Shown here piece by piece: positions 1 through 54,851 of a stretch of DNA of 64,000 nucleotides. The stretch is from contig OZ176050.1 in NCBI GenBank assembly GCA_964247055.1, positions 7,130,001-7,194,000 of the forward strand, given 5' to 3'. Numbering within the stretch: position 1 is the first letter of the stretch; the number at the start of each line of letters is the position of its first letter. The notes beneath the pieces are model-generated. The model saw only the letters and a program-made list of their open reading frames with translations. It searched no databases and was not told where the DNA came from. This DNA comes from Paragordius varius (taxonomy: Eukaryota; Animalia; Nematomorpha). The position numbers and the translations under genes are program-made.

Positions 1-3000
1 TGTTGTTAAGAAATGGTTTATATTTTACCCATACTTGTATGGTTAATATAATTTGTTTACTGTAAATTAATGGTTGAATATTGTAATTACCCATCTTTGT
101 ATGGTTAATATAATTTGATTGTTGTTAAGAAATGGTTTAAATTTTACCCATACTTGTATGGTTAATATAATTTGTTTACTGTAAATTAATGGTTGAATAT
201 TGTAATTACCCATCTTTGTATGGTTAATTTAATTTGATTGTTGTTAAGAAATGGTTAATATTTTACCCATACTTGTATGGTTAATATAATTTGTTTACTG
301 TAAATTAATGGTTGAATATTGTAATTACCCATCTTTGTATGGTTAATATAATTTGATTGTTGTTAAGAAATAATTAATATTTTACCCATACTTGTATAGT
401 TAATATAATTTGATTACTGTAAATTAATGGTTGAATATTGTAATTATTCATCTTTGTATGGTTAATATAATTTGATTGTTGTTAAGCAATGGTTAATATT
501 TTACCCATACTTGTATAATTAATATAATTTGATTAATTAATGGTTGAATATTGTAATTACCCATCTTTGTATGGTTAATATAATTTGATTGTTGTTAAGA
601 AATGGTTTATATTTTACCCATACTTGTATGGTTAATATAATTTGATTACTGTAAATTAATGGTTGAATATTGTAATTACCCATCTTTGTATGGTTAATAT
701 AATTTGATTGTTGTTAAGCAATGGTTATAATTTTACCCATACTTGTATAGTTAATATAATTTGATTACTGTAAATTAATGGTTGAATATTGTAATTACCC
801 ATCTTTGTATGGTTAATATAATTTGATTGTTGTTAAGAAATGGTTAATATTTTACCCATACTTGTATGGTTAATATAATTTGTTTACTGTAAATTAATGG
901 TTGAATATTGTAATTACCCATCTTTGTATGGTTAATATAATTTGATTGTTGTTAAGAAATAATTAATATTTTACCCATACTTGTATAGTTAATATAATTT
1001 GATTACTGTAAATTAATGGTTGAATATTGTAATTACCCATCTTTGTATGGTTAATATAATTTGATTGTTGTTAAGAAATAATTAATATTTTACCCATACT
1101 TGTATAGTTAATATAATTTGATTACTGTAAATTAATGGTTGAATATTGTAATTACCCATCTTTGTATGGTTAATATAATTTGATTGTTGTTAAGCAATGG
1201 TTATAATTTTACCCATACTTGTATAGTTAATATAATTTGATTACTGTAAATTAATGGTTGAATATTGTAATTATTCATCTTTGTATGGTTAATATAATTT
1301 GATTGTTGTTAAGAAATAATTAATATTTTACCCATACTTGTATAGTTAATATAATTTGATTACTGTAAATTAATGGTTGAATATTGTAATTACCCATCTT
1401 TGTATTGTTAATATAATTTGATTGTTGTTAAGAAATGGTTTATATTTTACCCATACTTGTATGGTTAATATAATTTGTTTACTGTAAATTAATGGTTGAA
1501 TATTGTAATTACCCATCTTTGTATGGTTAATATAATTTGATTGTTGTTAAGCAATGGTTAATATTTTACCCATACTTGTATAGTTAATATAATTTGATTA
1601 CTGTAAATTAATGGTTGAATATTGTAATTATTCATCTTTGTATGGTTAATATAATTTGATTGTTGTTAAGCAATGGTTAATATTTTACCCATACTTGTAT
1701 GGTTAATATAATTTGATTACTGTAAATTAATGGTTGAATATTGTAATTATTCATCTTTGTATGGTTAATATAATTTGATTGTTGTTAAGAAATAATTAAT
1801 ATTTTACTCATACTTGTATAGTTAATATAATTATTACTGTAAATTAATGGTTGAATATTGTAATTACCCATCTTTGTATGGTTAATATAATTTGATTGTT
1901 GTTAAGCAATGGTTAATATTTTACCCATACTTGTATAGTTAATATAATTTAATTACTGTAAATTAATGGTTGAATATTGTAATTACCCATCTTTGTATGG
2001 TTAATATAATTTGATTGTTGTTAAGAAATGGTTTATATTTTACCCATACTTGTATGGTTAATATAATTTGTTTACTGTAAATTAATGGTTGAATATTGTA
2101 ATTACCCATCTTTGTATGGTTAATATAATTTGATTGTTGTTAAGAAATGGTTTATATTTTACCCATACTTGTATGGTTAATATAATTTGTTTACTGTAAA
2201 TTAATGGTTGAATATTGTAATTACCCATCTTTGTATGGTTAATATAATTTGATTGTTGTTAAGCAATGGTTATAATTTTACCCATACTTGTATAGTTAAT
2301 ATAATTTGATTACTGTAAATTAATGGTTGAATATTGTAATTACCCATCTTTGTATGGTTAATTTAATTTGATTGTTGTTAAGAAATGGTTAATATTTTAC
2401 CCATACTTGTATGGTTAATATAATTTGTTTACTGTAAATTAATGGTTGAATATTGTAATTACCCATCTTTGTATGGTTAATATAATTTGATTGTTGTTAA
2501 GAAATAATTAATATTTTACCCATACTTGTATAGTTAATATAATTTGATTACTGTAAATTAATGGTTGAATATTGTAATTATTCATCTTTGTATGGTTAAT
2601 ATAATTTGATTGTTGTTAAGCAATGGTTAATATTTTACCCATACTTGTATGGTTAATATAATTTGATTACTGTAAATTAATGGTTGAATATTGTAATTAT
2701 TCATCTTTGTATGGTTAATATAATTTGATTGTTGTTAAGAAATAATTAATATTTTACTCATACTTGTATAGTTAATATAATTAGATTTCTGTTTAATGAT
2801 TAAATATTGTAATTACCCATCTTTGTATGGTTAATATAATTTGATTGTTGTTAAGAAATGGTTAATATTTTACCCATACTTGTATGGTTAATATAAATTG
2901 ATTATTTAAATTAATGGTTGAATATTGTAATTACCCATCTTTGTATGGTTAATATAATTTGATTGTTGTTAAGAAATGGTTAATATTTTGCTTATACTTG

Positions 3001-6000
3001 TATGGTTAATATAATTAGATTACTGTAAATTAATGGTTGAATATTGTAATTACCCATCTTTGTATGGTTAATATAATTTTAATGTTGGTTTGAAATGGTT
3101 AATATTTTACCCATCTTTGTATGGTTAATATAAATTGATTATTTAAATTAATGGTTGAATATTGTAAATACCCATCTTTGTATGGTTAATATAATTTGAT
3201 TGTTGTTATGAAATGGTTAATATTTTACCCATACTTGTATGGTTAATATAAATTGATTATTTAAATTAATGGTTGAATATTGTAATTACCCATCTTTGTA
3301 TGGTTAATATAATTTGATTGTTGTTAAGAAATGGTTAATATTTTGCTTATACTTGTATGGTTAAAATAATTAGATTACTGTAAATTAATGGTTGAATATG
3401 GTAATTACCCATCTTTGTATGGTTAATATAATTTGATTGTTGTTAAGAAATGGTTAATATTTTGCTTATACTTGTATGGTTAATATAATTAGATTACTGT
3501 AAATTAATGGTTGAATATTGTAATTACCCATCTTTGTATGGTTAATATAATTTTAATGTTGGTTTGAAATGGTTAATATTTTACCCATCTTTGTATGGTT
3601 AATATAAATTGATTATTTAAATTAATGGTTGAATATTGTAAATACCCATCTTTGTATGGTTAATATAATTTGATTGTTGTTATGAAATGGTTAATATTTT
3701 ACCCATACTTGTATGGTTAATATAAATTGATTATTTAAATTAATGGTTGAATATTGTAATTACCCATCTTTGTATGGTTAATATAATTTGATTGTTGTTA
3801 AGAAATGGTTAATATTTTGCTTATACTTGTATGGTTAAAATAATTAGATTACTGTAAATTAATGGTTGAATATGGTAATTACCCATCTTTGTATGGTTAA
3901 TATAATTTGATTGTTGTTAAGAAATGGTTAATATTTTGCTTATACTTGTATGGTTAATATAATTAGATTACTGTAAATTAATGGTTGAATATTGTAATTA
4001 CCCATCTTTGTATGGTTAATATAATTTTAATGTTGGTTTGAAATGGTTAATATTTTACCCATCTTTGTATGGTTAATATAAATTGATTATTTAAATTAAT
4101 GGTTGAATATTGTAAATACCCATCTTTGTATGGTTAATATAATTTGATTGTTGTTATGAAATGGTTAATATTTTATCCATATATGGTTAATATAATTTGA
4201 TTTCTGTAAATTAATGGTTGAATATTGTAATTACCTATCTTTGTATAGTTAATATAATTTGATTGTTGTTAAGATATGGTTAATATTTTACGCATACTTT
4301 TATGGTTAATATAATTTCCTTACTGTAAATTAATGGTTGAATATTGTAATTACCCATCTTTGAATGGTTAATATAATTTGATTGTCGTTAAGTGGTTAAT
4401 ATTTTACCCATACTTGTATGGTTAATATAATTTGATTAATGTAAATTAAAGTTTGAATATTGTAATTACCTATCTTTGAATGGTTAATATAATTTGATTG
4501 TCGTTAAGTGGTTAATATTTTACCCATACTTGTATGGTTAATATAATTTGATTAATGTAAATTAATGGTTGAATATTGTAATTACCCATCTTTGTATGGT
4601 TAATATAATTTGATTGTTGTTAAGAAATAATTAATATTTTACCCATACTTGTATAGTTAATATAATTTGATTACTGTAAATTAATGGTTGAATATTGTAA
4701 TTACCCATCTTTGTATGGTTAATATAATTTGATTGTTGTTAAGAAATAATTAATATTTTACCCATACTTGTATAGTTAATATAATTTGATTACTGTAAAT
4801 TAATGGTTGAATATTGTAATTACCCATCTTTGTATGGTTAATATAATTTGATTGTTGTTAAGCAATGGTTATAATTTTACCCATACTTGCATAGTTAATA
4901 TAATTTGATTACTGTAAATTAATGGTTGAATATTGTAATTATTCATCTTTGTATGGTTAATATAATTTGATTGTTGTTAAGATATGGTTAATATTTTACG
5001 CATACTTTTATGGTTAATATAATTTGTTTACTGTAAATTAATGGTTGAATATTGTAATTACCCATCTTTGTATGGTTAATATAATTTGATTGTTGTTAAG
5101 CAATGGTTATAATTTTACCCATACTTGTATAGTTAATATAATTTGATTACTGTAAATTAATGGTTGAATATTGTAATTACCCATCTTTGTATGGTTAATA
5201 TAATTTGATTGTTGTTAAGAAATAATTAATATTTTACCCATACTTGTATAGTTAATATAATTTGATTACTGTAAATTAATGGTTGAATATTGTAATTACC
5301 CATCTTTGTATGGTTAATATAATTTGATTGTTGTTAAGAAATAATTAATATTTTACCCATACTTGTATAGTTAATATAATTTGATTACTGTAAATTAATG
5401 GTTGAATATTGTAATTACCCATCTTTGTATGGTTAATATAATTTGATTGTTGTTAAGAAATAATTAATATTTTACCCATACTTGTATAGTTAATATAATT
5501 TGATTACTGTAAATTAATGGTTGAATATTGTAATTACCCATCTTTGTATGGTTAATATAATTTGATTGTTGTTAAGCAATGGTTATAATTTTACCCATAC
5601 TTGTATAGTTAATATAATTTGATTACTGTAAATTAATGGTTGAATATTGTAATTATTCATCTTTGTATGGTTAATATAATTTGATTGTTGTTAAGAAATG
5701 GTTTATATTTTACCCATACTTGTATGGTTAATATAATTTGTTTACTGTAAATTAATGGTTGAATATTGTAATTACCCATCTTTGTATGGTTAATATAATT
5801 TGATTGTTGTTAAGAAATAATTAATATTTTACTCATACTTGTATAGTTAATATAATGTAAATTAATGGTTGAATATTGTAATTACCCATCTTTGTATGGT
5901 TAATATAATTTGATTGTTGTTAAGCAATGGTTAATATTTTACCCATACTTGTATAGTTAATATAATTTGATTGTTGTTAAGAAATAATTAATATTTTACT

Positions 6001-9000
6001 CATACTTGTATAGTTAATATAATTATTACTGTAAATTAATGGTTGAATATTGTAATTACCCATCTTTGTATGGTTAATATAATTTGATTGTTGTTAAGAA
6101 ATGGTTTATATTTTACCCATACTTGTATGGTTAATATAATTTGTTTACTGTAAATTAATGGTTGAATATTGTAATTACCCATCTTTGTATGGTTAATATA
6201 ATTTGATTGTTGTTAAGAAATGGTTTATATTTTACCCATACTTGTATGGTTAATATAATTTGTTTACTGTAAATTAATGGTTGAATATTGTAATTACCCA
6301 TCTTTGTATGGTTAATATAATTTGATTGTTGTTAAGAAATGGTTTAAATTTTACCCATACTTGTATGGTTAATATAATTTGTTTACTGTAAATTAATGGT
6401 TGAATATTGTAATTACCCATCTTTGTATGGTTAATTTAATTTGATTGTTGTTAAGAAATGGTTTATATTTTACCCATACTTGTATGGTTAATATAATTTG
6501 TTTACTGTAAATTAATGGTTGAATATTGTAATTACCCATCTTTGTATGGTTAATATAATTTGATTGTTGTTAAGAAATGGTTTAAATTTTACCCATACTT
6601 GTATGGTTAATATAATTTGTTTACTGTAAATTAATGGTTGAATATTGTAATTACCCATCTTTGTATGGTTAATTTAATTTGATTGTTGTTAAGAAATGGT
6701 TAATATTTTGCTTATACTTGTATGGTTAATATAATTAGATTACTGTAAATTAATCGTTGAATATGGTAATTACCCATCTTTGTATGGTTAATATAAATTG
6801 ATTATTTAAATTAATGGTTGAATATTGTAAATACCCATCTTTGTATGGTTAATATAATTTGATTGTTGTTATGAAATGGTTAATATTTTACCCATACTTG
6901 TATGGTTAATATAAATTGATTATTTAAATTAATGGTTGAATATTGTAATTACCCATCTTTGTATGGTTAATATAATTTGATTGTTGTTAAGAAATGGTTA
7001 ATATTTTGCTTATACTTGTATGGTTAAAATAATTAGATTACTGTAAATTAATGGTTGAATATGGTAATTACCCATCTTTGTATGGTTAATATAATTTGAT
7101 TGTTGTTAAGAAATGGTTAATATTTTGCTTATACTTGTATGGTTAATATAATTAGATTACTGTAAATTAATGGTTGAATATTGTAATTATTCATCTTTGT
7201 ATGGTTAATATAATTTGATTGTTGTTAAGAAATGGTTTATATTTTACCCATACTTGTATGGTTAATATAATTTGTTTACTGTAAATTAATGGTTGAATAT
7301 TGTAATTACCCATCTTTGTATGGTTAATATAATTTGATTGTTGTTATGAAATGGTTAATATTTTATCCATATATGGTTAATATAATTTGATTTCTGTAAA
7401 TTAATGGTTGAATATTGTAATTACCTATCTTTGTATAGTTAATATAATTTGATTGTTGTTAAGATATGGTTAATATTTTACGCATACTTTTATGGTTAAT
7501 ATAATTTCCTTACTGTAAATTAATGGTTGAATATTGTAATTACCCATCTTTGAATGGTTAATATAATTTGATTGTCGTTAAGTGGTTAATATTTTACCCA
7601 TACTTGTATGGTTAATATAATTTGATTAATGTAAATTAAAGTTTGAATATTGTAATTACCCATCTTTGAATGGTTAATATAATTTGATTGTCGTTAAGTG
7701 GTTAATATTTTACCCATACTTGTATGGTTAATATAATTTGATTAATGTAAATTAATGGTTGAATATTGTAATTACCCATCTTTGTATGGTTAATATAATT
7801 TGATTGTTGTTAAGAAATAATTAATATTTTACCCATACTTGTATAGTTAATATAATTTGATTACTGTAAATTAATGGTTGAATATTGTAATTATTCATCT
7901 TTGAATGGTTAATATAATTTGATTGTCGTTAAGTGGTTAATATTTTACCCATACTTGTATGGTTAATATAATTTGATTAATGTAAATTAAAGTTTGAATA
8001 TTGTAATTACCCATCTTTGAATGGTTAATATAATTTGATTGTCGTTAAGTGGTTAATATTTTACCCATACTTGTATGGTTAATATAATTTGATTAATGTA
8101 AATTAAAGTTTGAATATTGTAATTACCCATCTTTGAATGGTTAATATAATTTGATTGTCGTTAAGTGGTTAATATTTTACCCATACTTGTATGGTTAATA
8201 TAATTTGATTAATGTAAATTAATGGTTGAATATTGTAAATACCCATCTTTGTATGGTTAATATAATTTGATTGTTGTTATGAAATGGTTAATATTTTATC
8301 CATATATGGTTAATATAATTTGATTTCTGTAAATTAATGGTTGAATATTGTAATTACCTATCTTTGTATAGTTAATATAATTTGATTGTTGTTAAGATAT
8401 GGTTAATATTTTACGCATACTTTTATGGTTAATATAATTTCCTTACTGTAAATTAATGGTTGAATATTGTAATTACCCATCTTTGAATGGTTAATATAAT
8501 TTGATTGTCGTTAAGTGGTTAATATTTTACCCATACTTGTATGGTTAATATAATTTGATTAATGTAAATTAAAGTTTGAATATTGTAATTACCCATCTTT
8601 GAATGGTTAATATAATTTGATTGTCGTTAAGTGGTTAATATTTTACCCATACTTGTATGGTTAATATAATTTTTTTAATGTAAATTAATGGTTGAATATT
8701 GTAATTACCCATCTTTGTATGGTTAATATAATTTGATTGTTGTTAAGAAATAATTAATATTTTACCCATACTTGTATAGTTAATATAATTTGATTAATGT
8801 AAATTAATGGTTGAATATTGTAATTACCCATCTTTGTATGGTTAATATAATTTGATTGTTGTTAAGAAATAATTAATATTTTACCCATACTTGTATAGTT
8901 AATATAATTTGATTACTGTAAATTAATGGTTGAATATTGTAATTACCCATCTTTGTATGGTTAATATAATTTGATTGTTGTTAAGAAATAATTAATATTT

Positions 9001-12000
9001 TACCCATACTTGTATAGTTAATATAATTTGATTACTGTAAATTAATGGTTGAATATTGTAATTACCCATCTTTGTATGGTTAATATAATTTGATTGTTGT
9101 TAAGAAATAATTAATATTTTACCCATACTTGTATAGTTAATATAATTTGATTACTGTAAATTAATGGTTGAATATTGTAATTACCCATCTTTGTATGGTT
9201 AATATAATTTGATTGTTGTTAAGAAATAATTAATATTTTACCCATACTTGTATAGTTAATATAATTTGATTACTGTAAATTAATGGTTGAATATTGTAAT
9301 TACCCATCTTTGAATGGTTAATATAATTTGATTGTCGTTAAGTGGTTAATATTTTACCCATACTTGTATGGTTAATATAATTTGATTAATGTAAATTAAT
9401 GGTTGAATATTGTAATTACCCATCTTTGTATGGTTAATATAATTTGATTGTTGTTAAGAAATAATTAATATTTTACCCATACTTGTATAGTTAATATAAT
9501 TTGATTACTGTAAATTAATGGTTGAATATTGTAATTACCCATCTTTGTATGGTTAATATAATTTGATTGTTGTTAAGCAATGGTTATAATTTTACCCATA
9601 CTTGTATAGTTAATATAATTTGATTACTGTAAATTAATGGTTGAATATTGTAATTACCCATCTTTGTATGGTTAATATAATTTGATTGTTGTTAAGAAAT
9701 GGTTAATATTTTACCCATACTTGTATGGTTAATATAATTTGTTTACTGTAAATTAATGGTTGAATATTGTAATTACCCATCTTTGTATGGTTAATATAAT
9801 TTGATTGTTGTTAAGAAATAATTAATATTTTACCCATACTTGTATAGTTAATATAATTTTATTACTGTAAATTAATGGTTGAATATTGTAATTACCCATC
9901 TTTGTATGGTTAATATAATTTGATTGTTGTTAAGCAATGGTTATAATTTTACCCATACTTGTATGGTTAATATAATTTGTTTACTGTAAATTAATGGTTG
10001 AATATTGTAATTACCCATCTTTGTATGGTTAATATAATTTGATTGTTGTTAAGAAATGGTTTAAATTTTACCCATACTTGTATGGTTAATATAATTTGTT
10101 TACTGTAAATTAATGGTTGAATATTGTAATTACCCATCTTTGTATGGTTAATTTAATTTGATTGTTGTTAAGAAATGGTTAATATTTTACCCATACTTGT
10201 ATGGTTAATATAATTTGTTTACTGTAAATTAATGGTTGAATATTGTAATTACCCATCTTTGTATGGTTAATATAATTTGATTGTTGTTAAGAAATAATTA
10301 ATATTTTACCCATACTTGTATAGTTAATATAATTTGATTACTGTAAATTAATGGTTGAATATTGTAATTACCCATCTTTGTATGGTTAATATAATTTGAT
10401 TGTTGTTAAGCAATGGTTAATATTTTACCCATACTTGTATAGTTAATATAATTTGATTATTTAAATTAATGGTTGAATATTGTAAATACCCATCTTTGTA
10501 TGGTTAATATAATTTGATTGTTGTTATGAAATGGTTAATATTTTACCCATACTTGTATGGTTAATATAAATTGATTATTTAAATTAATGGTTGAATATTG
10601 TAATTACCCATCTTTGTATGGTTAATATAATTTGATTGTTGTTAAGAAATGGTTAATATTTTGCTTATACTTGTATAGTTAATATAATTTGATTACTGTA
10701 AATTAATGGTTGAATATTGTAATTACCCATCTTTGTATGGTTAATATAATTTGATTGTTGTTAAGAAATAATTAATATTTTACCCATACTTGTATAGTTA
10801 ATATAATTTGATTACTGTAAATTAATGGTTGAATATTGTAATTACCCATCTTTGTATGGTTAATATAATTTGATTGTTGTTAAGCAATGGTTATAATTTT
10901 ACCCATACTTGTATAGTTAATATAATTTGATTACTGTAAATTAATGGTTGAATATTGTAATTATTCATCTTTGTATGGTTAATATAATTTGATTGTTGTT
11001 AAGAAATGGTTTATATTTTACCCATACTTGTATGGTTAATATAATTTGTTTACTGTAAATTAATGGTTGAATATTGTAATTACCCATCTTTGTATGGTTA
11101 ATATAATTTGATTGTTGTTAAGAAATAATTAATATTTTACTCATACTTGTATAGTTAATATAATTATTACTGTAAATTAATGGTTGAATATTGTAATTAC
11201 CCATCTTTGTATGGTTAATATAATTTGATTGTTGTTAAGCAATGGTTTATATTTTACCCATACTTGTATAGTTAATATAATTTGATTACTGTAAATTAAT
11301 GGTTGAATATTGTAATTACCCATCTTTGTATGGTTAATATAATTTGATTGTTGTTAAGAAATAATTAATATTTTACTCATACTTGTATAGTTAATATAAT
11401 TATTACTGTAAATTAATGGTTGAATATTGTAATTACCCATCTTTGTATGGTTAATATAATTTGATTGTTGTTAAGAAATGGTTTATATTTTACTCATACT
11501 TGTATAGTTAATATAATTATTACTGTAAATTAATGGTTGAATATTGTAATTACCCATCTTTGTATGGTTAATATAATTTGATTGTTGTTAAGCAATGGTT
11601 TATATTTTACCCATACTTGTATAGTTAATATAATTTGATTACTGTAAATTAATGGTTGAATATTGTAATTACCCATCTTTGTATGGTTAATATAATTTGA
11701 TTGTTGTTAAGAAATAATTAATATTTTACCCATACTTGTATAGTTAATATAATTTGATTACTGTAAATTAATGGTTGAATATTGTAATTACCCATCTTTG
11801 TATGGTTAATATAATTTGATTGTTGTTAAGAAATAATTAATATTTTACTCATACTTGTATAGTTAATATAATTATTACTGTAAATTAATGGTTGAATATT
11901 GTAATTACCCATCTTTGTATGGTTAATATAATTTGATTGTTGTTAAGAAATGGTTTATATTTTACTCATACTTGTATAGTTAATATAATTATTACTGTAA

Positions 12001-15000
12001 ATTAATGGTTGAATATTGTAATTACCCATCTTTGTATGGTTAATATAATTTGATTGTTGTTAAGAAATGGTTTATATTTTACCCATACTTGTATGGTTAA
12101 TATAATTTGTTTACTGTAAATTAATGGTTGAATATTGTAATTACCCATCTTTGTATGGTTAATATAATTTGATTGTTGTTAAGAAATAATTAATATTTTA
12201 CTCATACTTGTATAGTTAATATAATTATTACTGTAAATTAATGGTTGAATATTGTAATTACCCATCTTTGTATGGTTAATATAATTTGATTGTTGTTAAG
12301 CAATGGTTAATATTTTACCCATACTTGTATAGTTAATATAATTTGATTACTGTAAATTAATGGTTGAATATTGTAATTACCCATCTTTGTATGGTTAATA
12401 TAATTTGATTGTTGTTAAGAAATGGTTTATATTTTACCCATACTTGTATGGTTAATATAATTTGTTTACTGTAAATTAATGGTTGAATATTGTAATTACC
12501 CATCTTTGTATGGTTAATATAATTTGATTGTTGTTAAGAAATGGTTTATATTTTACCCATACTTGTATGGTTAATATAATTTGTTTACTGTAAATTAATG
12601 GTTGAATATTGTAATTACCCATCTTTGTATGGTTAATATAATTTGATTGTTGTTAAGAAATGGTTTAAATTTTACCCATACTTGTATGGTTAATATAATT
12701 TGTTTACTGTAAATTAATGGTTGAATATTGTAATTATTCATCTTTGTATGGTTAATATAATTTGATTGTTGTTAAGCAATGGTTAATATTTTACCCATAC
12801 TTGTATGGTTAATATAATTTGATTACTGTAAATTAATGGTTGAATATTGTAACCTATCTTTGCATGGTTAATTTGATTTTTGTTAAGAAATGGTTAATAT
12901 TTTACCCATACTTGTATGGTTAATATAATTTGATTACTGTAAATTAATGGTTGAATATTGTAACCTATCTTTGCATGGTTAATTTAATTTGATTGTTGTT
13001 AAGAAATGGTTAATATTTTACCCATACTTGTATGGTTAATATAATTTGATTACTGTAAATTAATGGTTGAATATTGTAACCTATCTTTGCATGGTTAATT
13101 TGATTGTTGTTAAGAAATGGTTAATATTTTACCCATACTTGTATGGTTAATATAATTTGATTACTGTAAATTAATGGTTGAATATTGTAACCTATCTTTG
13201 CATGGTTAATTTGATTGTTGTTAAGAAATGGTTAATATTTTACCCATACTTGTATGGTTAATATAATTTGATTACTGTAAATTAATGGTTGAATATTGTA
13301 ACCTATCTTTGCATGGTTAATTTAATTTGATTGTTGTTAAGAAATGGTTAATATTTTACCCATACTTGTATGGTTAATATAATTTGTTTACTGTAAATTA
13401 ATGGTTGAATATTGTAATTACCCATCTTTGTATGGTTAATTTAATTTGATTGTTGTTAAGAAATGGTTAATATTTTACCCATACTTGTATGGTTAATATA
13501 ATTTGTTTACTGTAAATTAATGGTTGAATATTGTAATTACCCATCTTTGTATGGTTAATATAATTTGATTGTTGTTAAGAAATAATTAATATTTTACCCA
13601 TACTTGTATAGTTAATATAATTTGATTACTGTAAATTAATGGTTGAATATTGTAATTATTCATCTTTGTATGGTTAATATAATTTGATTGTTGTTAAGCA
13701 ATGGTTAATATTTTACCCATACTTGTATGGTTAATATAATTTGATTACTGTAAATTAATGGTTGAATATTGTAATTATTCATCTTTGTATGGTTAATATA
13801 ATTTGATTGTTGTTAAGAAATGGTTAATATTTTACCCATACTTGTATGGTTAATATAATTTGTTTACTGTAAATTAATGGTTGAATATTGTAATTACCCA
13901 TCTTTGTATGGTTAATTTAATTTGATTGTTGTTAAGAAATGGTTAATATTTTACCCATACTTGTATGGTTAATATAATTTGTTTACTGTAAATTAATGGT
14001 TGAATATTGTAATTACCCATCTTTGTATGGTTAATATAATTTGATTGTTGTTAAGAAATAATTAATATTTTACCCATACTTGTATAGTTAATATAATTTG
14101 ATTACTGTAAATTAATGGTTGAATATTGTAATTATTCATCTTTGTATGGTTAATATAATTTGATTGTTGTTAAGCAATGGTTAATATTTTACCCATACTT
14201 GTATGGTTAATATAATTTGATTACTGTAAATTAATGGTTGAATATTGTAATTATTCATCTTTGTATGGTTAATATAATTTGATTGTTGTTAAGAAATAAT
14301 TAATATTTTACTCATACTTGTATAGTTAATATAATTAGATTTCTGTTTAATGATTAAATATTGTAATTACCCATCTTTGTATGGTTAATATAATTTGATT
14401 GTTTTTAAGAAATGGTTAATATTTTACCCATCTTTGTATGGTTAATACAAATTGATTATTTAAATTAATGGTTGAATATTGTAATTACCCATCTTTGTAT
14501 GGTTAATATAATTTGATTGTTGTTATTCAATGGTTAATATTTTACCCAAACTTGGATGGTTAATATAATTTGATTACTGTAAATTAATGGCTGAATATTG
14601 TAATTACCCATCTTTGTATGGTTAATATAATTTGATTGTTGTTAAGAAATGGTTAATATTTTGCTTATACTTGTATGGTTAATATAATTAGATTACTGTA
14701 AATTAATGGTTGAATATGGTAATTACCCATCTTTGTATGGTTAATATAATTTGATTGTTGTTAAGAAATGGTTAATATTTTGCTTATACTTGTATGGTTA
14801 ATATAATTAGATTACTGTAAATTAATCGTTGAATATGGTAATTACCCATCTTTGTATGGTTAATATAAATTGATTATTTAAATTAATGGTTGAATATTGT
14901 AAATACCCATCTTTGTATGGTTAATATAATTTGATTGTTGTTATGAAATGGTTAATATTTTACCCATACTTGTATGGTTAATATAAATTGATTATTTAAA

Positions 15001-16643
15001 TTAATGGTTGAATATTGTAATTACCCATCTTTGTATGGTTAATATAATTTGATTGTTGTTAAGAAATGGTTAATATTTTGCTTATACTTGTATGGTTAAA
15101 ATAATTAGATTACTGTAAATTAATGGTTGAATATGGTAATTACCCATCTTTGTATGGTTAATATAATTTGATTGTTGTTAAGAAATGGTTAATATTTTGC
15201 TTATACTTGTATGGTTAATATAATTAGATTACTGTAAATTAATAGTTGAATATTGTAATTACCCATCTTTGTATGGTTAATATAATTTTAATGTTGGTTT
15301 GAAATGGTTAATATTTTACCCATCTTTGTATGGTTAATATAAATTGATTATTTAAATTAATGGTTGAATATTGTAAATACCCATCTTTGTATGGTTAATA
15401 TAATTTGATTGTTGTTATGAAATGGTTAATATTTTATCCATATATGGTTAATATAATTTGATTTCTGTAAATTAATGGTTGAATATTGTAATTACCTATC
15501 TTTGTATAGTTAATATAATTTGATTGTTGTTAAGATATGGTTAATATTTTACGCATACTTTTATGGTTAATATAATTTCCTTACTGTAAATTAATGGTTG
15601 AATATTGTAATTACCCATCTTTGAATGGTTAATATAATTTGATTGTCGTTAAGTGGTTAATATTTTACCCATACTTGTATGGTTAATATAATTTGATTAA
15701 TGTAAATTAATGGTTGAATATTGTAATTACCCATCTTTGATAGGTTAATATAATTAGATTGTTGTTAAGATATGGTTAATATTTTACGCATACTTTTATG
15801 GTTAATATAATTTCCTTACTGTAAATTAATGGTTGAATATTGTAATTACCCATCTTTGAATGGTTAATATAATTTGATTGTCGTTAAGTGGTTAATATTT
15901 TACCCATACTTGTATGGTTAATATAATTTGATTAATGTAAATTAAAGTTTGAATATTGTAATTACCCATCTTTGAATGGTTAATATAATTTGATTGTCGT
16001 TAAGTGGTTAATATTTTACCCATACTTGTATGGTTAATATAATTTGATTAATGTAAATTAAAGTTTGAATATTGTAATTACCCATCTTTGAATGGTTAAT
16101 ATAATTTGATTGTCGTTAAGTGGTTAATATTTTACCCATACTTGTATGGTTAATATAATTTGATTAATGTAAATTAATGGTTGAATATTGTAATTACCCA
16201 TCTTTGAATGGTTAATATAATTTGATTGTCGTTAAGATATGGTTAATATTTTACGCATACTTGTATGGTTAATATAATTTCCTTACTGTAAATTAATGGT
16301 TGAATATTGTAATTACCTATCTTTGTATAGTTAATATAATTTGATTGTGGTTAAGAAATGGTTAATATTTTACCCATACTTGTATGGTTAATATAATTTA
16401 ATTAATGTAAATTAATGGTTAAATATTGTAATTACCCATCTTTGAATGGTTAATATAATTTGATTGTTGTTAAGCAATGGTTAATATTTTACCCATACTT
16501 GTATGGTTAATATAATTTGATTACTGTAAATTAATGGTTGAATATTGTAATTACCCATATTTTTATGGTTAATATATTATGATTGTTGTTATAAAATGGT
16601 TAATATTTTACCCATACTTATATGGTTAATATAATTTGATTTC
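1..16643. repeat. Satellite DNA array, 119-bp monomer (62+57-bp halves; 26/31/31/31-bp subunits), about 140 copies, running off the window start
   Basis: TGTTGTTAAGAAATGGTT recurs at 1, 120, 239 (period 119). Consensus ATGGTTAATATTTTACCCATACTTGT-ATGGTTAATATAATTTGATTACTGTAAATTA-ATGGTTGAATATTGTAATTACCCATCTTTGT-ATGGTTAATATAATTTGATTGTTGTTAAGAA. The ORF track shows nothing in the array. Confidence 0.99.
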
Positions 16644-32767: not shown

Positions 32768-35015
32768 ATGAATAATTTTGATTTTGAAACTCAGAAATCT
32801 GAGATAACACTCTTCGAAAGCCCCAAATCATATTCCCAAAGTGAGCAATCTGATGAAAATATTGCTGACTTAACAACAGGGATAAATTCTAGTTTTTCAT
32901 GCGCAAAATTTTATAGCTCTACAAATAAAAATGGTCCTTACAAAAATTTTGATCAAACGCCGGATCTTTATATTTGTGGCGGATGTCAAAAACCCATTCG
33001 TGATAAGTATTTGTTGAAGGCGGAAAGCAAATTTTGGCATGAGGATTGCTTGAAATGTTCTTGTTGTGAATGTCGATTGGGTGAGGTTGGATCTACATTT
33101 TATCTCAAATCCAATCTGTATCTCTGCAAAAGGGATTATCTCAGGTAAAACGTTTAAAATTAAATTTATATGATGTAGTTGGTTTAAAAACATAAATTGT
33201 TTTCAAGGAATATGAACTTTACAAAGATGTTTCAACTTTATTAGTTTATTATCTACAAGTTATTCAGTGTTTATTTGTTTTTTAAGTTAAAACTGTCAAA
33301 CATTTGAAAAGCTTTTTTATGATTTAAGAAAATTATATCGGCAAAAACTCAAAGACTTTAAATTTTATATTAATTACTCAGCGAATTCGATAATAAGCCA
33401 TATGCCATTCCACTTAAATTAATTAAAAAAATCTCCTGAGTTTGGTCGTTAATAAACAATTCCTAATTATAAGTAATTTCTTTTTTTCTGACATATAAAT
33501 TATTTATATTATTGTCTGCTTCCTTAATTAATATTAATTGTTTAACGATATTATATATATATATACATATATATGATGATTAGATTATTTGGAAATTCGG
33601 GATTCTGTTCCGTATGTCAAAAAGTTATACCGCCATTCGAAATGGTCATGAAAGCCAAAACAAATGTTTATCATTTGGAGTGTTTTGCGTGTCAGAACTG
33701 TAAGCACAGGTAATAATATCAGAATCAGATAACAAATTTAGGAGAAATTTTAACAGAATTATTTTTTTTTAATTTAGTTAATTATGTTATACTTTCTTTG
33801 ACTTTCTCGCTTCAAAAAGTTATTAATGAACTTAGAGTGGACTCCCATTATAATAAGGTTTGTTAATAAACAGAGTCCATAAACTATTTAACTGATGCTG
33901 ATCATTAACCACTTCTCGATTTTTAAAATAGGTTTAGGCTTTTAAGATAGTGTGCTTGGAGTTGCGAGAAAGTTTTCCACGATCTAATTTTGACTATTTT
34001 TTTTTAATTACACCTCGATTTTTTTAAGATATTATTCTTTATTTCAAAAAAAAAGAAATTCCAATTTATGCCAATAATGTGCCATGTAGCTTCCCGGCAA
34101 TCGAGGTCAATTAGCACTGAAGATTGCTCGAAATATTAATTATCTCTGTGAATCTACTTATGTGTGTGTGTGATTGCTACAGTCGAGGTCGATTTTTTGC
34201 AATACTTCTCCATATGTGGCGATTTTTAGTTTTAATGCTGAGTTCTGCCAAGATTGCATTGTTTTCTTTTAGAATATTGTCCCTTATCCTTCTTTGGCCC
34301 CTTTTACCTGTTACACTAACTTTACATCAAGGATTTTTCCAGTGAGTTAGATCTCATAATGTGGCCAAAAAAGGATAGTTTGGTACGGATGGACATTCCA
34401 AGCAATGACATATCGGGATTTATTTTATTTAAATTGCTTTGCTAATTATTTTATCCGTCCATTTTATTTGCAAGAGTTTTCTCCCATCCAGTATTTTAAA
34501 GAAGTTTATTATCCTTGGGTCGGATTTTTTCAAAGTCCAACCCTATGTCAAAAAAATTTGTGAATTAATACAACCAAACCATGTCCATTCATATTTTTAT
34601 GATTCATTCATATTTATGAATATATATATATATATATATATATTTATTTATTTATTTAATTATACCATAAAGATATTATATTTATAATAATTATCAAAAT
34701 TTAATGAAAAAAATGCCATAAACACTCACTTTTTAATCTCAAACTGTTTTTTTAAGAAGTTTATCTATCTGTTGTGAGTGATATGTATGGTAGGACCAGA
34801 AGCCAGGCCAGCCCTGATTAGATTATATATGTATATATTCATTATATCGTCATAAGAAGATTGGTGGCGATATCAATTTATTTTTATATTAATATATATA
34901 TGACTCCATTAGTTAGCCAACTAACCAACTAACTAATGAAAATGAAAATCTTAGTAGTTAGTTATAAAAAAAATATTTTTAATGCATAATATTATATTAG
35001 TTTTAATGAAATAAG

Positions 35016-47249: not shown

Positions 47250-48821
47250 TCAAGTCCACGGGTAAAAATTGACATGGAGTGCAGATCCAATTAACGTAAA
47301 AAATGTCGCATACCAGAAGTAGAAAGGCATTATACGGTACAAAAGTTTTAAGAAATTAACAAGCGATATATTTTGCAGAGCATTTGACTTGCGTGAATCA
47401 TACTCTTCACTTTTGTCGAGCAGCGATTTTAAAAAACAAGCATTGAATGTTTGAGCTAAGTACACATAAAAGAAGGGAAAGGATGAACATATAACTCTTG
47501 TAGATATTTCAATGTGAGACATAAATACTAGCGTGTATAGGAGTAAAACACCATGAATAATGACGGGAAACAAGGGATTCCAAATAAACTTCCAAAGAAT
47601 ATTGGAGGTGTTTAGGGATAAAGATTTCACAACACAAGAAACGGCAAACTTAATTGACAAAACAAGGTACATCAATATGGGCAGGGCCAAAACGAAACAA
47701 GGTGCCTTTCGCCATTTAAAATAATGCAAAAATCCAACGTCCCAATACTTACGTTGTATGTTAAAATAAAAATGAGGCATCAACATTCTAAGTAACATAT
47801 TATATTTGGATGAACACCATTCAGGTTCAGTGTAAGAAATATTCAATGGCTCAAATGTTGTATTAATTTTATTATAGGCCTCAATTAAATTTGGAGAAAG
47901 TTTGTAATTTTGACCGATGCCATATTTAACAATATCAGCGATGTGTTCCACTGGATTATGTTGGCCAAAGTATCCTTTAGTTTTTCCGAAATCCTTAATC
48001 AAATGATTCTGTGGCAAACAAAAGGTTGAATGGGCATAAGCATTATACATAACAAGTGGTCCCATCACAAATATGATGCAAATCACAGATAAAATTAAAA
48101 ACTTAATCAAATTCCAGAATTTTAGCTTATTTTTTTCTATAAAATCGTAAAGTAATTGATAAAGTAGAGAATGAGCCAGGTATATTACATTGAAAACACC
48201 TATGAATCTTGTGCCTATGCTAAAGCCAACCAGTAAGGCCGATAATAAAGTAAACAGGTAATTATGATTTTTATAGGACTTGGATATCAAGTAAAAGGCC
48301 AAAAAAGATAAAAACATATAAAGAGATTCGGAATACAGCGTTGTGTAAAAGATTGTGGCTGGATTAATTATAAAAAACCATAATAAAACTTTTGTTTGTG
48401 ATAGTTGATAAATTGAAACGAATAAAAATATTCTTTGCAAAATCAACAATGTAAAATAATTTAAGAAAATATTAAAAAATATGCCTGTTAATATTAAATT
48501 ATTGAAGATATCAAAAGTTTTAATTAACAATGGAAAAATCGGAAAAAATGCTAAAAGGTGCTCATAGACATATCCGTTTTGTGCAATAAAATAAAAATAA
48601 CGAGCATCCCATTTTACAAATCCGTCAAGATAGTGATTAATTATATAATTAAATGCATCGGGTTTATGGTCAGAAACATAATTGTTAGCAAATGTAATAT
48701 AAAATAAATATAAAATTTTAAATGAGAAAAAGGTAATAAATACGTTAAATTTTGTAGAAGACGTTTTGATTCGAGATGAAACACGTATGGGACTTTGAAA
48801 ATCTTGAGACTTGGATGTCAT
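47250..48821 (-). CDS. PIGV: GPI mannosyltransferase 2 (PIG-V / Gpi18), intronless, 523 aa
   Basis: Motifs KWDARYFYFIAQNGYVYEHLLAFFPIFP, INPATIFYTTLYSESLY, IQRKYWDVGFLHYF, CFVLALP and C-terminal GSALHVNFYPWT, with multiple hydrophobic segments. AATAAA lies at 47182-47177. Confidence 0.95.
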   Translation of the reverse strand: MTSKSQDFQSPIRVSSRIKTSSTKFNVFITFFSFKILYLFYITFANNYVSDHKPDAFNYIINHYLDGFVKWDARYFYFIAQNGYVYEHLLAFFPIFPLLIKTFDIFNNLILTGIFFNIFLNYFTLLILQRIFLFVSIYQLSQTKVLLWFFIINPATIFYTTLYSESLYMFLSFLAFYLISKSYKNHNYLFTLLSALLVGFSIGTRFIGVFNVIYLAHSLLYQLLYDFIEKNKLKFWNLIKFLILSVICIIFVMGPLVMYNAYAHSTFCLPQNHLIKDFGKTKGYFGQHNPVEHIADIVKYGIGQNYKLSPNLIEAYNKINTTFEPLNISYTEPEWCSSKYNMLLRMLMPHFYFNIQRKYWDVGFLHYFKWRKAPCFVLALPILMYLVLSIKFAVSCVVKSLSLNTSNILWKFIWNPLFPVIIHGVLLLYTLVFMSHIEISTRVICSSFPFFYVYLAQTFNACFLKSLLDKSEEYDSRKSNALQNISLVNFLKLLYRIMPFYFWYATFFTLIGSALHVNFYPWT

Positions 48822-51800: not shown

Positions 51801-52556
51801 ATTAATTGATTGTAAAAATACTTATACTCTTTTGTAACATCAATAAAATATATAATATTAGTTGGAAAAAAATGAGCCACTGATTTTAATCAATAAATTA
51901 TTATTATTCCTATACTTTTGGGATGTGAAATACGGGCAGGCACGGGTAAGGTTATATTTATGCAGGTGTTATTATTAAATAAATCAAAATATTTTGGGAA
52001 ATGACATATATTTTTTAACATATTCTATTTTTACGAAATATGAACTTTAGGATATCCTTCATATTGTTATTCCTTTTAGCAGCGGAATCTTTTCTCGAAG
52101 GTTATTTTATTTATATTGGGAACAGAACATTATAAAAAGATAATTAATTGTGATCATTTTAATTTGGAAAATAATTAATTTTGCAAGGGTTTTTAGTATA
52201 ACTTTTCATCAAGGTATCATTAGGCTCATTTTTTAAGATTATCTTTTAAGGTATAAAAAATTAATTTATTAGGCCTGCATGTAACAATAGCCCTTAAGGC
52301 AAAACGTTTCTTTCCAATTATTTAGAACCTAGGTTACAATTATTTATAAAAGTGGTAAAATAATATTTAACAATTTTTAAGCATTAAGCCCTTGAATGTA
52401 TCCGAGTTTTGTAAGAACCTAGGACAGTTCGTCTTAACCTAGAAGCATATAAATATCATTTGTTTATCATAGCAAAATATCATGTTTAAAAAGAATCGAT
52501 AAGTAAAGAACTTATAAAATGGCGGTAAATTTATAAATTACTAAATAATTTTTTAG

Positions 52557-54851
52557 GTTATAAAGTTTCGTCCTTATACAAAAGCAAGAAAATTCAGCCT
52601 AAACATGAATTGGTTAAACGCAAAAAGCAGAAAGATAAACAGACATCTGCAAAAAAATTCCCCAAACATGACATTGCAGTTTTGAATCATGTGAATTTAG
52701 CAGCAAAATTAAACGAAATCTTAGGGAATAAAGGGCAATCATTCCTAATTTCACCATTCCTTATCAGTCATACATTGAATATTTTGACTGTTGGGACGAA
52801 TAATAATGAATGTAAGGCTAATGTTGATAATGTTTTAAACACACTTCATAACACCAACAATAATAATAATAATAATATGAATATGAAAAAACGTGCCAAT
52901 AAACTTTATATGGGACAAGGTATAAATCATAAAGATAAAAGGACAATTAAGGTCCGACCGATTGTGAATGATCAAGCGAGCATTCAGAATTTAAAATCCT
53001 ATATAGGCGGTAGTAACGATATTAGGGAAAGTGAGGATATTAATGCAAACCAACTCACAAACTTTTTCTTACATCGGTCTGTGGCCGACGTTTTTCAAGC
53101 AATCCTTGATTGGTTTCTTAGTCTTTTACCCGGTACAAATTACCAATACTTGAAGACACCATTTAACGTGATAAACGTTTTATACGTCCAAAAAGGTTAT
53201 AAACTCGTCAAAAATTACCTTAAAACTTTGAACAAATTGGAAAAGGAAAAAAAGGAATTAGTGATTCAAACAGAGGTGGGTGCACTTGAAGATACTGATA
53301 ATATTACAGCAGTAGTTTCCAAAATTCGATTTGTACTTAACACCGATTGGGCACAGGCTTTTGATCCAAAGTAAAATTTGGTTATATGAATCATTAAACT
53401 ATTTATAAACAAATTTAAATGTTATATAGGGTTATATAAATATATAAGTATATTTCTAAAAGCTAGGATAGCGAGTACTCTAAATATTATCATATTTATG
53501 ATAATAAAAAACTTTTTTAATTGTTTAGAAATAATGTCGATATAAATGTGGAAGAACCCACTCTACCTCCCGTCATCCCAACGACTCAAACCCCAGAAAT
53601 GTCTGACGAAACTACTTTGGAAACCACTTTTGAAACCACTTTTGAGCCCACGACAACCGAGATAATTGAGCCAAGTGAGATGACAACGGATGAAAACTTA
53701 TCCACAACGGAACCGCCGGAAGTAACAGAGGAAGTTACTCAAACGCCAGAGTCAACTATAACTTCAGAAGTGCCCGAAACAATTAGCACAGAAACTGTTG
53801 TACCCAGTGATGAACAAACTACTACACCTAGTAATGAAATTGAGGAAATAACTATACCACAACCTGTATCAACGACACCCAATGATATAGATTTTACAGA
53901 TGAATCCGAAACTGACGAGGAAAGTAGAGAATTTCCAGTTGATGACGATAGCGAGATATCCAAACGATCGATTTATTGGGAACGAATGCTATCTGTTCGA
54001 AATAAAAAACAACAGCCCAGCGATATTGAACCCGAAAACGGTATGGATGATGATGGCTTAGATACCGGCGACATGTTGATTGGACCACAATTGATGGTGG
54101 GACAGTTTAAAGCCAAACATGCTATGATTTGGAATAATGATGAGATAAAAGCTAGCATTTTACGTTTTGCCCTGCATGATAAACGATTTTTTTATGTGAT
54201 CAAACCTCAAACGGATACTATCAATGATAATGTATCGAGACGAAAAAGGCAAAGCTCTTCAGGTGATGAAACAACCACTTTGGATTCTATTAGTAAGTCA
54301 ATAAGCGCCAATCCAAATCTAATAATACAAATTATGGACCACCGTGTCGAAAAAAGTCAGGAACTTCAAAATGTTTCACTTCCCAAATTTAATCTCACCT
54401 ACAATAGTATTGATTTGGTCCAAATTCTCCCTAGCATAGGAATCGAATGTTTATTTGAGTAAGTAATTGACACTTTTGGTTTTTTGACAAATTTAGAAGT
54501 TTTTAATTATTAGTATATTTCCCTTTTTTTTATAGAAAGGAACAGATAAATAGTTTGATTCAAAATAATCCCAGTACAGTAACACACATCCAACACAATG
54601 CCACAATCCAGACTTATGAGACGGGTTTAATGTTGGAAAGTCAGATATTTTCCGAAATAAATGTCCAACAAGAAATGGATAAAAATGAAAATTCAGAATT
54701 AACCGTCGGACCTAATTCTGAACAACCGGTCGAAAATCTTTTGACACAAAAACGTTCTATATTTAAAGCGACATACGGGTTTATCTTTTTTATCGCAGGC
54801 GAGGATAAAAAAATTATAGGTTGGGGTCAATACCACCAAAATAACGCCTAA
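52557..54851 (+). CDS. Highly divergent serpin with mucin-like insertion; exons (52557)-53370, 53529-54458, 54536-54851; first exon not found
   Basis: Serpin motifs occur in order: FLISPFLISHTLNILTVGT, NVLYVQKGYKL, FVLNTDWAQAFD, ILRFALHDKRFFYVIKP, VSLPKFNLT..DLVQILPSIGIECLF, VTHIQHNATIQTYETG and FKATYGFIFFI...IIGWGQY. Both introns are phase 2 with GT/AG ends and conserve the frame. Confidence 0.85.

Follow-up and report, generated by a model that had tools for sequence, protein, structure and literature searches.

Non-inhibitory serpins are common, and few of them have a known role. One of these, angiotensinogen (SERPINA8), is a hormone precursor that receives a single renin cut in its N-terminal tail. 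Drosophila Spn4A (Spn42Da) inhibits furin, with R-x-K-R serving as the P4-P1 bait of a loop of normal length behind an inhibitory hinge, while the clade B serpins PAI-2 and MENT, which are intracellular and still inhibitory, carry CD-loop insertions of about 30 residues. Human C1-inhibitor (SERPING1) has an O-glycosylated stretch that is rich in Thr, Pro and Glu. This stretch forms an extensively O-glycosylated, mucin-type N-terminal domain on the serpin (PMC5986245). Drosophila Spn100A (CG1342), a protein of 653 residues described as having a 'serpin-derived fold', has an atypical hinge and an exonic insertion of 294 residues between serpin blocks, which follows an N-terminal block of 44 residues (PMC2770083). 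Here we describe a relative of these proteins in the nematomorph Paragordius varius, encoded within 64,000 nucleotides of contig OZ176050.1 (positions 7,130,001 to 7,194,000; hereafter the window). We read the locus, with slightly better than even confidence in the combined picture, as an intact, lineage-specific gene for a secreted, serpin-derived protein that would be non-inhibitory, stalk-bearing and nicked.

The locus lies on the plus strand of very AT-rich eukaryotic DNA and is modelled as a four-exon gene with GT-AG introns, compatible splice phases throughout and a coding sequence of 2121 nucleotides (706 codons). The exons have a GC content of 0.33-0.42 and zero in-frame stops, against 0.18-0.24 and stops in every frame for the introns. 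The CAGCTG motif is absent from the gene. Assignments to named secondary-structure elements follow established serpin topology, and the signal peptide of exon 0 was judged by eye only. The parts of the gene, in window coordinates, are as follows.

52040-52100, plus strand: exon 0, with the start codon and a signal-peptide-like N-terminus (MNFRISFILLFLLAAESFLE); its donor, G/gttatt in phase 1, fits the acceptor at 52556
52557-53370, plus strand: exon 1, from the N-terminal extension through s3A and W..AFD, assigned by hhalign and ESM features
52559-52678, plus strand: basic N-terminal extension of 40 residues, in exon 1
52679-52843, plus strand: serpin hA-s6B-hB-hC, in exon 1, placed by hhalign
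52844-53077, plus strand: insertion of 78 residues between hC and hD, in exon 1, with poly-Asn, MKKR and DKR
53078-53239, plus strand: hD-s2A-hE, in exon 1, placed by hhalign
53240-53305, plus strand: short linker in place of s1A and helix F, in exon 1
53306-53368, plus strand: s3A and W..AFD, in exon 1
53371-53528, plus strand: intron 1, 158 nucleotides, GC 0.18, phase 2, at the seventh codon after the Trp of W..F
53529-54458, plus strand: exon 2, 310 codons, counterpart of the middle exon of about 105-125 codons in ordinary serpins
53530-53967, plus strand: acidic, mucin-like insertion in the s3A-s4C loop, 146 residues rich in Thr, Ser and Pro with ISKR at the end, then SIYW
53968-54069, plus strand: basic, then acidic linker (SIYWERML..NKK..DDDGLDTG), in exon 2, putatively placed where s4C would be
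54070-54207, plus strand: serpin s3C-s3B block (..GPQLM.., ..FFYVIKP), in exon 2, placed by hhalign
54208-54306, plus strand: second insertion, which lengthens the s3B-hG stretch by about 20 residues and contains RRKR, then QSSSGDETTT
54307-54456, plus strand: serpin hG / LPKF / hH / G..F block, placed by Pfam Serpin positions 231-289, hhalign and PDB entry 6ssv
54459-54535, plus strand: intron 2, 77 nucleotides, phase 2, two bases past the Phe codon of G..F
54536-54851, plus strand: exon 3, s5A to s5B, stop codon TAA
54579-54641, plus strand: s5A and hinge (..HNATIQTYETGLMLES), in exon 3
54618-54755, plus strand: acidic reactive-loop equivalent, 46 residues long with TQKR at the end, in exon 3
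54756-54836, plus strand: s1C/s4B-s5B, in exon 3, followed by the stop TAA

The original prediction, made for 53529-54300, had placed about 140 Thr/Glu/Pro-rich residues right after W..AFD. These residues exist, 146 in number, but the intron at 53371-53528 lies between the two, 53529 is the first base of an exon, and that exon runs on to 54458. Its other readings of the protein agree with the model: the translation of 53530-54456 contains the acidic stretch ending in ISKR, then SIYW; SRRKR, then QSS, follows the FYVIKP strand, with RRKR at 54238-54249; MKKR lies in the N-terminal insertion of exon 1 and QKR, then S, at the end of the reactive-loop equivalent in exon 3. The signal peptide on which the predicted encounter with furin depended has its candidate exon at 52040-52100.

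Compared with known serpins and with those of the same genome, the gene is of real serpin ancestry, as had been proposed, but its divergence is extreme. Four independent lines agree on this ancestry: ESM language-model features, hhalign comparisons, PDB profile searches and intron positions. Pfam scans were run exon by exon, with a gathering cut-off of 27 bits for Serpin (PF00079); exon 2 scored 19.2-22.5 bits, below that cut-off, over profile positions 231-289 and within its last 60 residues. With ESM features, all 30 of the 30 matches of exon 1 were serpin clusters (score 0.93), which we treat as a lead only, and no family stood out clearly for the serpin part of exon 2.

Since only one protein, P0001, came from a word search that used an ordinary serpin exon of the genome as query, the reference profile (A1) was built from canonical serpin exons of the same genome together with this one database serpin. 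Aligned to A1 with hhalign, exon 1 covers hA-s6B-hB-hC, followed by hD-s2A-hE (P = 5e-4 to 9e-3), with its last part on s3A and W..F; exon 2 covers, in its second half, s3B through LPKF to G..F (P = 0.0031), and exon 3 covers s5A with the hinge and s4B-s5B (P = 0.17). The exon-wise values against the same-genome serpins, 0.0086, 0.0031 and 0.17 for exons 1, 2 and 3, combine to 4e-4 by Fisher's method; with two-sequence profiles that include a paralogue, described below, they become 1.9e-4, 1.7e-3 and 0.035, combining to 2e-6. The matches of exons 1-3 to the serpin core run collinear. Profile searches of the PDB returned a serpin, 6ssv, as the sole match of the middle part and another, the C-terminal peptide of Iripin-4 (7zas), as the sole match of the C-terminal part, and for the N-terminal part only spurious ribosomal uL1 matches on the basic extension. 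Searches of the PDB by phmmer with each exon returned nothing.

Both introns around exon 2 interrupt the same codon in the same phase 2 as in canonical serpin genes of the genome (L003, L005, L006/L020, L008, L009 and L021), and the position and phase of intron 2 are common to five canonical serpin genes and the paralogue. Because its flanking introns match in place and phase, exon 2 is the homologue of the serpin middle exon, normally 105-125 codons, swollen to 310. The recognisable core comprises hA-hC, hD-hE, s3A with W..F, s3C-s3B, LPKF-hH, s5A with H.A...E.G, and s4B-s5B. The serpin fold has three sheets and eight to nine helices, helix F among them. By alignment, the region of s1A and helix F has 22 residues versus 45 in the reference serpin P0001, about 23 fewer, and helix F is probably shortened or lost. 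The loop after W..AFD toward s4C holds about 180 extra residues, namely the 146-residue acidic part and the linker, which seems to replace s4C.

One other relative was found in the genome, and genome searches revealed no further family members. This paralogue, of the kind that the original prediction had proposed to look for, lies 2.3 Mb away on the minus strand of the same contig (L026, G000:C1:9465664-9467446; L026 3665-5447). It shares about 30% identity with the gene where the two align, and the position and phase of the last intron are common to both; Pfam gave no serpin match on its exons. The paralogue is compact and without the mucin-like insert, having only RCPAPAPTPA, then AKKR, at the insertion site, and its long acidic loop carries RKKR, then Q. 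Several smaller observations concern this pair. The middle exon of the paralogue reads in two frames, and one frame-consistent solution removes a GT-AG micro-intron of 26 nucleotides (L026 4779-4754); its signal-peptide-like start (MGLCLKISILALF) is seemingly joined to the next exon by a GC-AG intron of 42 nucleotides. The RRKR segment of exon 2 (54205-54285) resembles the RKKR loop of the paralogue (L026 3749-3835, minus strand), with 38% identity over 29 residues at different positions in the fold, and the likeness may reflect a moved cassette or chance in low-complexity sequence. The 78-residue insertion between hC and hD sits where the paralogue has an intron (L026 about 4890-5168), so that intron gain, intron loss or exonisation at this spot is a possibility.

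In a normal serpin, the reactive loop runs for about 20-25 residues from the hinge Glu to s1C. The equivalent here has 46 residues, with the Glu in ETG and the Arg in QKR counted as its ends, versus about 22 in an ordinary serpin of the genome (L009). The hinge, ETGLMLESQI, matches the inhibitory consensus of Drosophilid serpins (PMC2770083) at three of ten positions and carries Leu-Met-Leu-Glu where small residues are required. Because the hinge fails this consensus, the protein should not act as a suicide inhibitor; it is probably non-inhibitory, with protease inhibition lost.

Mucin-like (PTS) domains are long, dominated by Ser/Thr and Pro, usually arranged in tandem repeats and densely O-glycosylated. 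The stretch of 146 residues at the start of exon 2 contains 33 Thr, 29 Glu, 17 Pro, 13 Ser and 11 Asp, with a very acidic run before ISKR. Its first 115 residues are 34% Ser and Thr, 13% Pro and 23% Asp and Glu, and hold no Lys or Arg. The sole repeat within it is a unit of 12 nucleotides in 3.2 copies at 53608-53645 (ETTF ETTF), which points to growth by slippage. Four of 20,000 base shuffles of the 146-codon stretch were free of in-frame stops, and its GC content of 0.42 is the highest in the gene, versus 0.18-0.24 in the adjoining introns. No pyrimidine-rich acceptor was found between 53531 and 54292, and splicing-out of the mucin-like part through an internal acceptor was rejected on this ground. 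The shuffle test, the GC content, the lack of a usable internal acceptor and the repeat together indicate, in line with the original prediction, that the stretch is coding and not a retained intron; the product is probably an O-glycosylated, disordered stalk. A consensus-like donor, GTAAGT, occurs further on in exon 2 at 54293, across the ISKS codons, and the frame stays open through it; a small optional intron may exist there.

The protein is also unusually rich in paired basic residues. By within-exon shuffling, KR pairs number seven against 1.3 expected (p about 2e-4), [KR][KR] pairs 17 against 7.7 (p about 3e-4) and R-x-[KR]-R motifs one against 0.04 (p = 0.04). That one motif, RRKR at 54238-54249, is the sole strict furin-type site, so the furin-type sites first proposed in the plural reduce to one, the others being plain dibasic KR; it lies in the s3B-hG insertion, outside the reactive loop, as had been noted in contrasting it with Spn4A. 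The paralogue shows the same tendency, with four KR pairs against 1.1 expected, 12 [KR][KR] pairs against 4.8 and one strict site (RKKR), while seven ordinary serpins of the genome show no KR enrichment (p from 0.19 to 1). Five of the seven KR sites sit in extensions or insertions not found in ordinary serpins. A KR of the hC-hD region, KKR then A, aligns with QKR then A of the paralogue. Proprotein-convertase P domains (P_proprotein) are present at two loci of the genome (C4:9885459 and C3:7708481-7708875). A convertase substrate calls for secretory routing, an exposed dibasic or furin-type site and a convertase in the same organism, and the gene offers a signal-peptide-like exon, such sites in insertions where they are likely to be exposed, and P domains in its genome. 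The KR enrichment, its pattern over the insertions and the paralogue, and these P domains make a real case, if an indirect one, for convertases acting on the protein.

We give a little more than even credence to a glycoprotein of serpin descent that is secreted, does not inhibit proteases, carries an exposed acidic stalk with probable O-glycosylation, and receives nicks at RRKR and at some KR sites. Under such a scheme, the protein would enter the secretory pathway and its core would fold as a scaffold, with the acidic glycosylated stalk projecting from the reactive-loop pole. Subtilisin-like proprotein convertases would then make nicks in exposed loops, at RRKR and probably also at some of the KR sites. 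Once a serpin core has folded, its loops can usually be cut without the pieces coming apart, as in cleaved serpins, and the product would be a nicked, still assembled glycoprotein instead of free pieces. The likely site of action would be extracellular, in a surface coat, the matrix or the parasite's interface with its host. The original idea of furin-type processing gains from the KR enrichment and the convertase P domains. The proposed shedding of an O-glycosylated domain is not supported: no basic site occurs between W..AFD and the mucin-like part, which therefore should not be releasable as a free piece, and excision of that part is unlikely.

A number of observations weigh against this reading. 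Taken one by one, the serpin matches are weak; Pfam reports no Serpin match on exon 1 or exon 3, and its cut-off is reached on no exon. A word search with residues 150-309 of exon 2, its serpin part, returned nothing, and neither did HMMER with exon 1 against 1.84 billion representatives at E <= 0.001. No orthologue was found outside the genome. AlphaFold gave exon 1 alone a mean predicted local distance difference test (pLDDT) score of 34, which is too low to use, and the presumed serpin fold might not form at all should helix F and s4C indeed be missing. For a mucin domain, a Ser and Thr content of 34% is borderline, and a long tandem repeat is not present. One KR, in HDKR just ahead of the FFYVIKP strand, probably lies within the core, and the basic clusters in general may serve glycosaminoglycan or surface binding instead of cleavage.

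This last point leads to the alternative that survives best, which we nonetheless consider unlikely: an uncleaved secreted glycoprotein whose basic clusters are binding patches for glycosaminoglycan, cuticle or a host surface, or a Lys-rich by-product of AT-driven composition, with RRKR arising by chance. Heparin-binding basic patches are common in serpins, Lys makes up 7.3% of this protein, the N-terminal extension reads as a plain basic patch, and a single strict furin motif is only marginally unexpected by shuffling (p about 0.04). The KR excess, however, persists at p about 2e-4 when the basic N-terminus is dropped, the seven other serpins of the same AT-rich genome lack it, and the paralogue too has one strict R-x-K-R site.

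Somewhat less probable again is a polyprotein or prohormone-like precursor, the original prediction in its strong form, in which convertases would cut at KR and RRKR into separate products, one with a glycosylated acidic tail, and the serpin fold would be irrelevant. Angiotensinogen provides a precedent for a serpin as hormone precursor, and the enrichment of KR (about five times the expected number here and about 3.5 times in the paralogue, and not in ordinary serpins), the location of five of the seven sites in segments foreign to ordinary serpins, the KR-then-Ala site aligned between the paralogues in the hC-hD region and the seeming loss of helix F and s4C as core elements would all suit it. 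The core motifs and both intron positions have nevertheless been kept over a long divergence, so the scaffold is apparently constrained; with no basic site between W..AFD and the mucin-like part, that part would not be released by itself, and the repeated peptide units typical of neuropeptide precursors are absent.

It is improbable that the locus is a decaying gene or a wrong model: either a dying serpin pseudogene, or a gene from which the mucin-like stretch is spliced out or to whose transcript it does not belong. Such a view would account for the extreme divergence, the lack of relatives in searches, the sub-threshold Pfam score, the missing core parts and the GTAAGT within exon 2. Yet 706 codons are open over four exons in which all splice phases fit, while the other frames and the introns have one stop per about 10-30 codons, and the acceptor that removal would use was not found between 53531 and 54292. 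The scored exons of the old paralogue are open as well, with splice sites fitting at the shared last intron. That the scored exons of both paralogues, at about 30% identity, are still open argues for selective constraint and not for a pseudogene. An inhibitor of furin-like or Arg-specific proteases with an Spn4A-style basic bait, to which QKR then S at the end of the reactive-loop equivalent and RKKR in the paralogue loop might point, was rejected as highly improbable, since the hinge has Leu, Met, Leu and Glu where small residues are needed and agrees with the consensus at three of ten positions, a loop of about 46 residues that ends in TQKR puts any bait far too distant from the hinge for the serpin trap, and the strict RRKR lies in the s3B-hG insertion and not at P4-P1.

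The reading of a nicked, stalk-bearing glycoprotein can be carried one speculative step further. A hairworm serpin may have given rise to a new secreted, convertase-processed scaffold, founding a small lineage-specific family (the gene and its paralogue) in which the suicide-inhibitor machinery is switched off and loops carry KR and R-x-K-R, this member having an O-glycosylated acidic stalk at the reactive-loop pole; its place might be where parasite and host meet, for example in a coat or in offering Arg-specific host proteases a decoy substrate. We offer this extension tentatively and regard it as doubtful. Should the parasitic stage express the gene, the product would be a candidate for a molecule secreted by the parasite or present on its surface, and the host interface of this parasite is little known in molecular terms. 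More generally, the gene indicates how far a serpin can be remodelled (three loops greatly enlarged by insertion, a reduced helix F region, and sites seemingly suited to convertases) with its ancestry still traceable through intron positions and weak collinear matches. Serpin relatives in this genome escape Pfam and searches of more than a billion proteins, so counts of gene families in it will be too low.

Elsewhere in the window, a 119-bp satellite fills positions 1-16641, with 141 copies and 93% matches; its GC content is 0.21, and on the plus strand G strongly outnumbers C. An intronless PIG-V gene (GPI mannosyltransferase 2; 523 codons, Pfam 161 bits) occupies 47250-48821 on the minus strand, and a LIM-domain exon lies at 32768-33148 on the plus strand. 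With these as neighbours, the gene appears to be a solitary serpin relative, not part of a serpin cluster. Elsewhere, the genome contains at least 96 exon-level Serpin matches on many contigs, with tandem arrays on C7 at 2.73-3.03 Mb; in several of these matches the frame meets TAA between one and three times, a possible sign of very short introns.

Among described proteins, Spn100A is the nearest architecture. Both proteins have serpin-homology blocks split by a very large internal exonic insertion and an atypical hinge; unlike in Spn100A, the main insertion here follows W..F, in mid-fold, and is accompanied by three further insertions, and the Spn100A insert is not described as mucin-like (PMC2770083). 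Orthology to Spn100A was rejected, given the empty HMMER search with exon 1 at E <= 0.001 and the different insertion site. Like C1-inhibitor, the protein combines a serpin with a stretch of about 110-140 residues, heavily O-glycosylated in C1-inhibitor and presumably so here. In C1-inhibitor, the domain is N-terminal, outside the fold, on a working inhibitor with a normal hinge, whereas here the stretch interrupts the fold and the hinge is of a non-inhibitory kind; the likeness is one of convergence. With Spn4A, the protein shares an R-x-K-R motif in a secreted member of the serpin family, but here the motif has its place in the s3B-hG insertion, and the hinge does not fit the inhibitory consensus. 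As in angiotensinogen, a serpin scaffold would serve as a protease substrate, although angiotensinogen is without dibasic sites or a mucin-like part. The extra sequence between hC and hD recalls PAI-2 and MENT, but has 78 residues. A literature search on non-inhibitory serpins with a mucin-like insertion gave, among the 15 of 129 matches listed, no serpin paper using the term 'mucin-like'. The original suggestion that such a system had not been described is nonetheless too strong, as each element has a precedent in Spn100A (PMC2770083), C1-inhibitor (PMC5986245) or angiotensinogen, and the gene is an odd variant within a known protein family.

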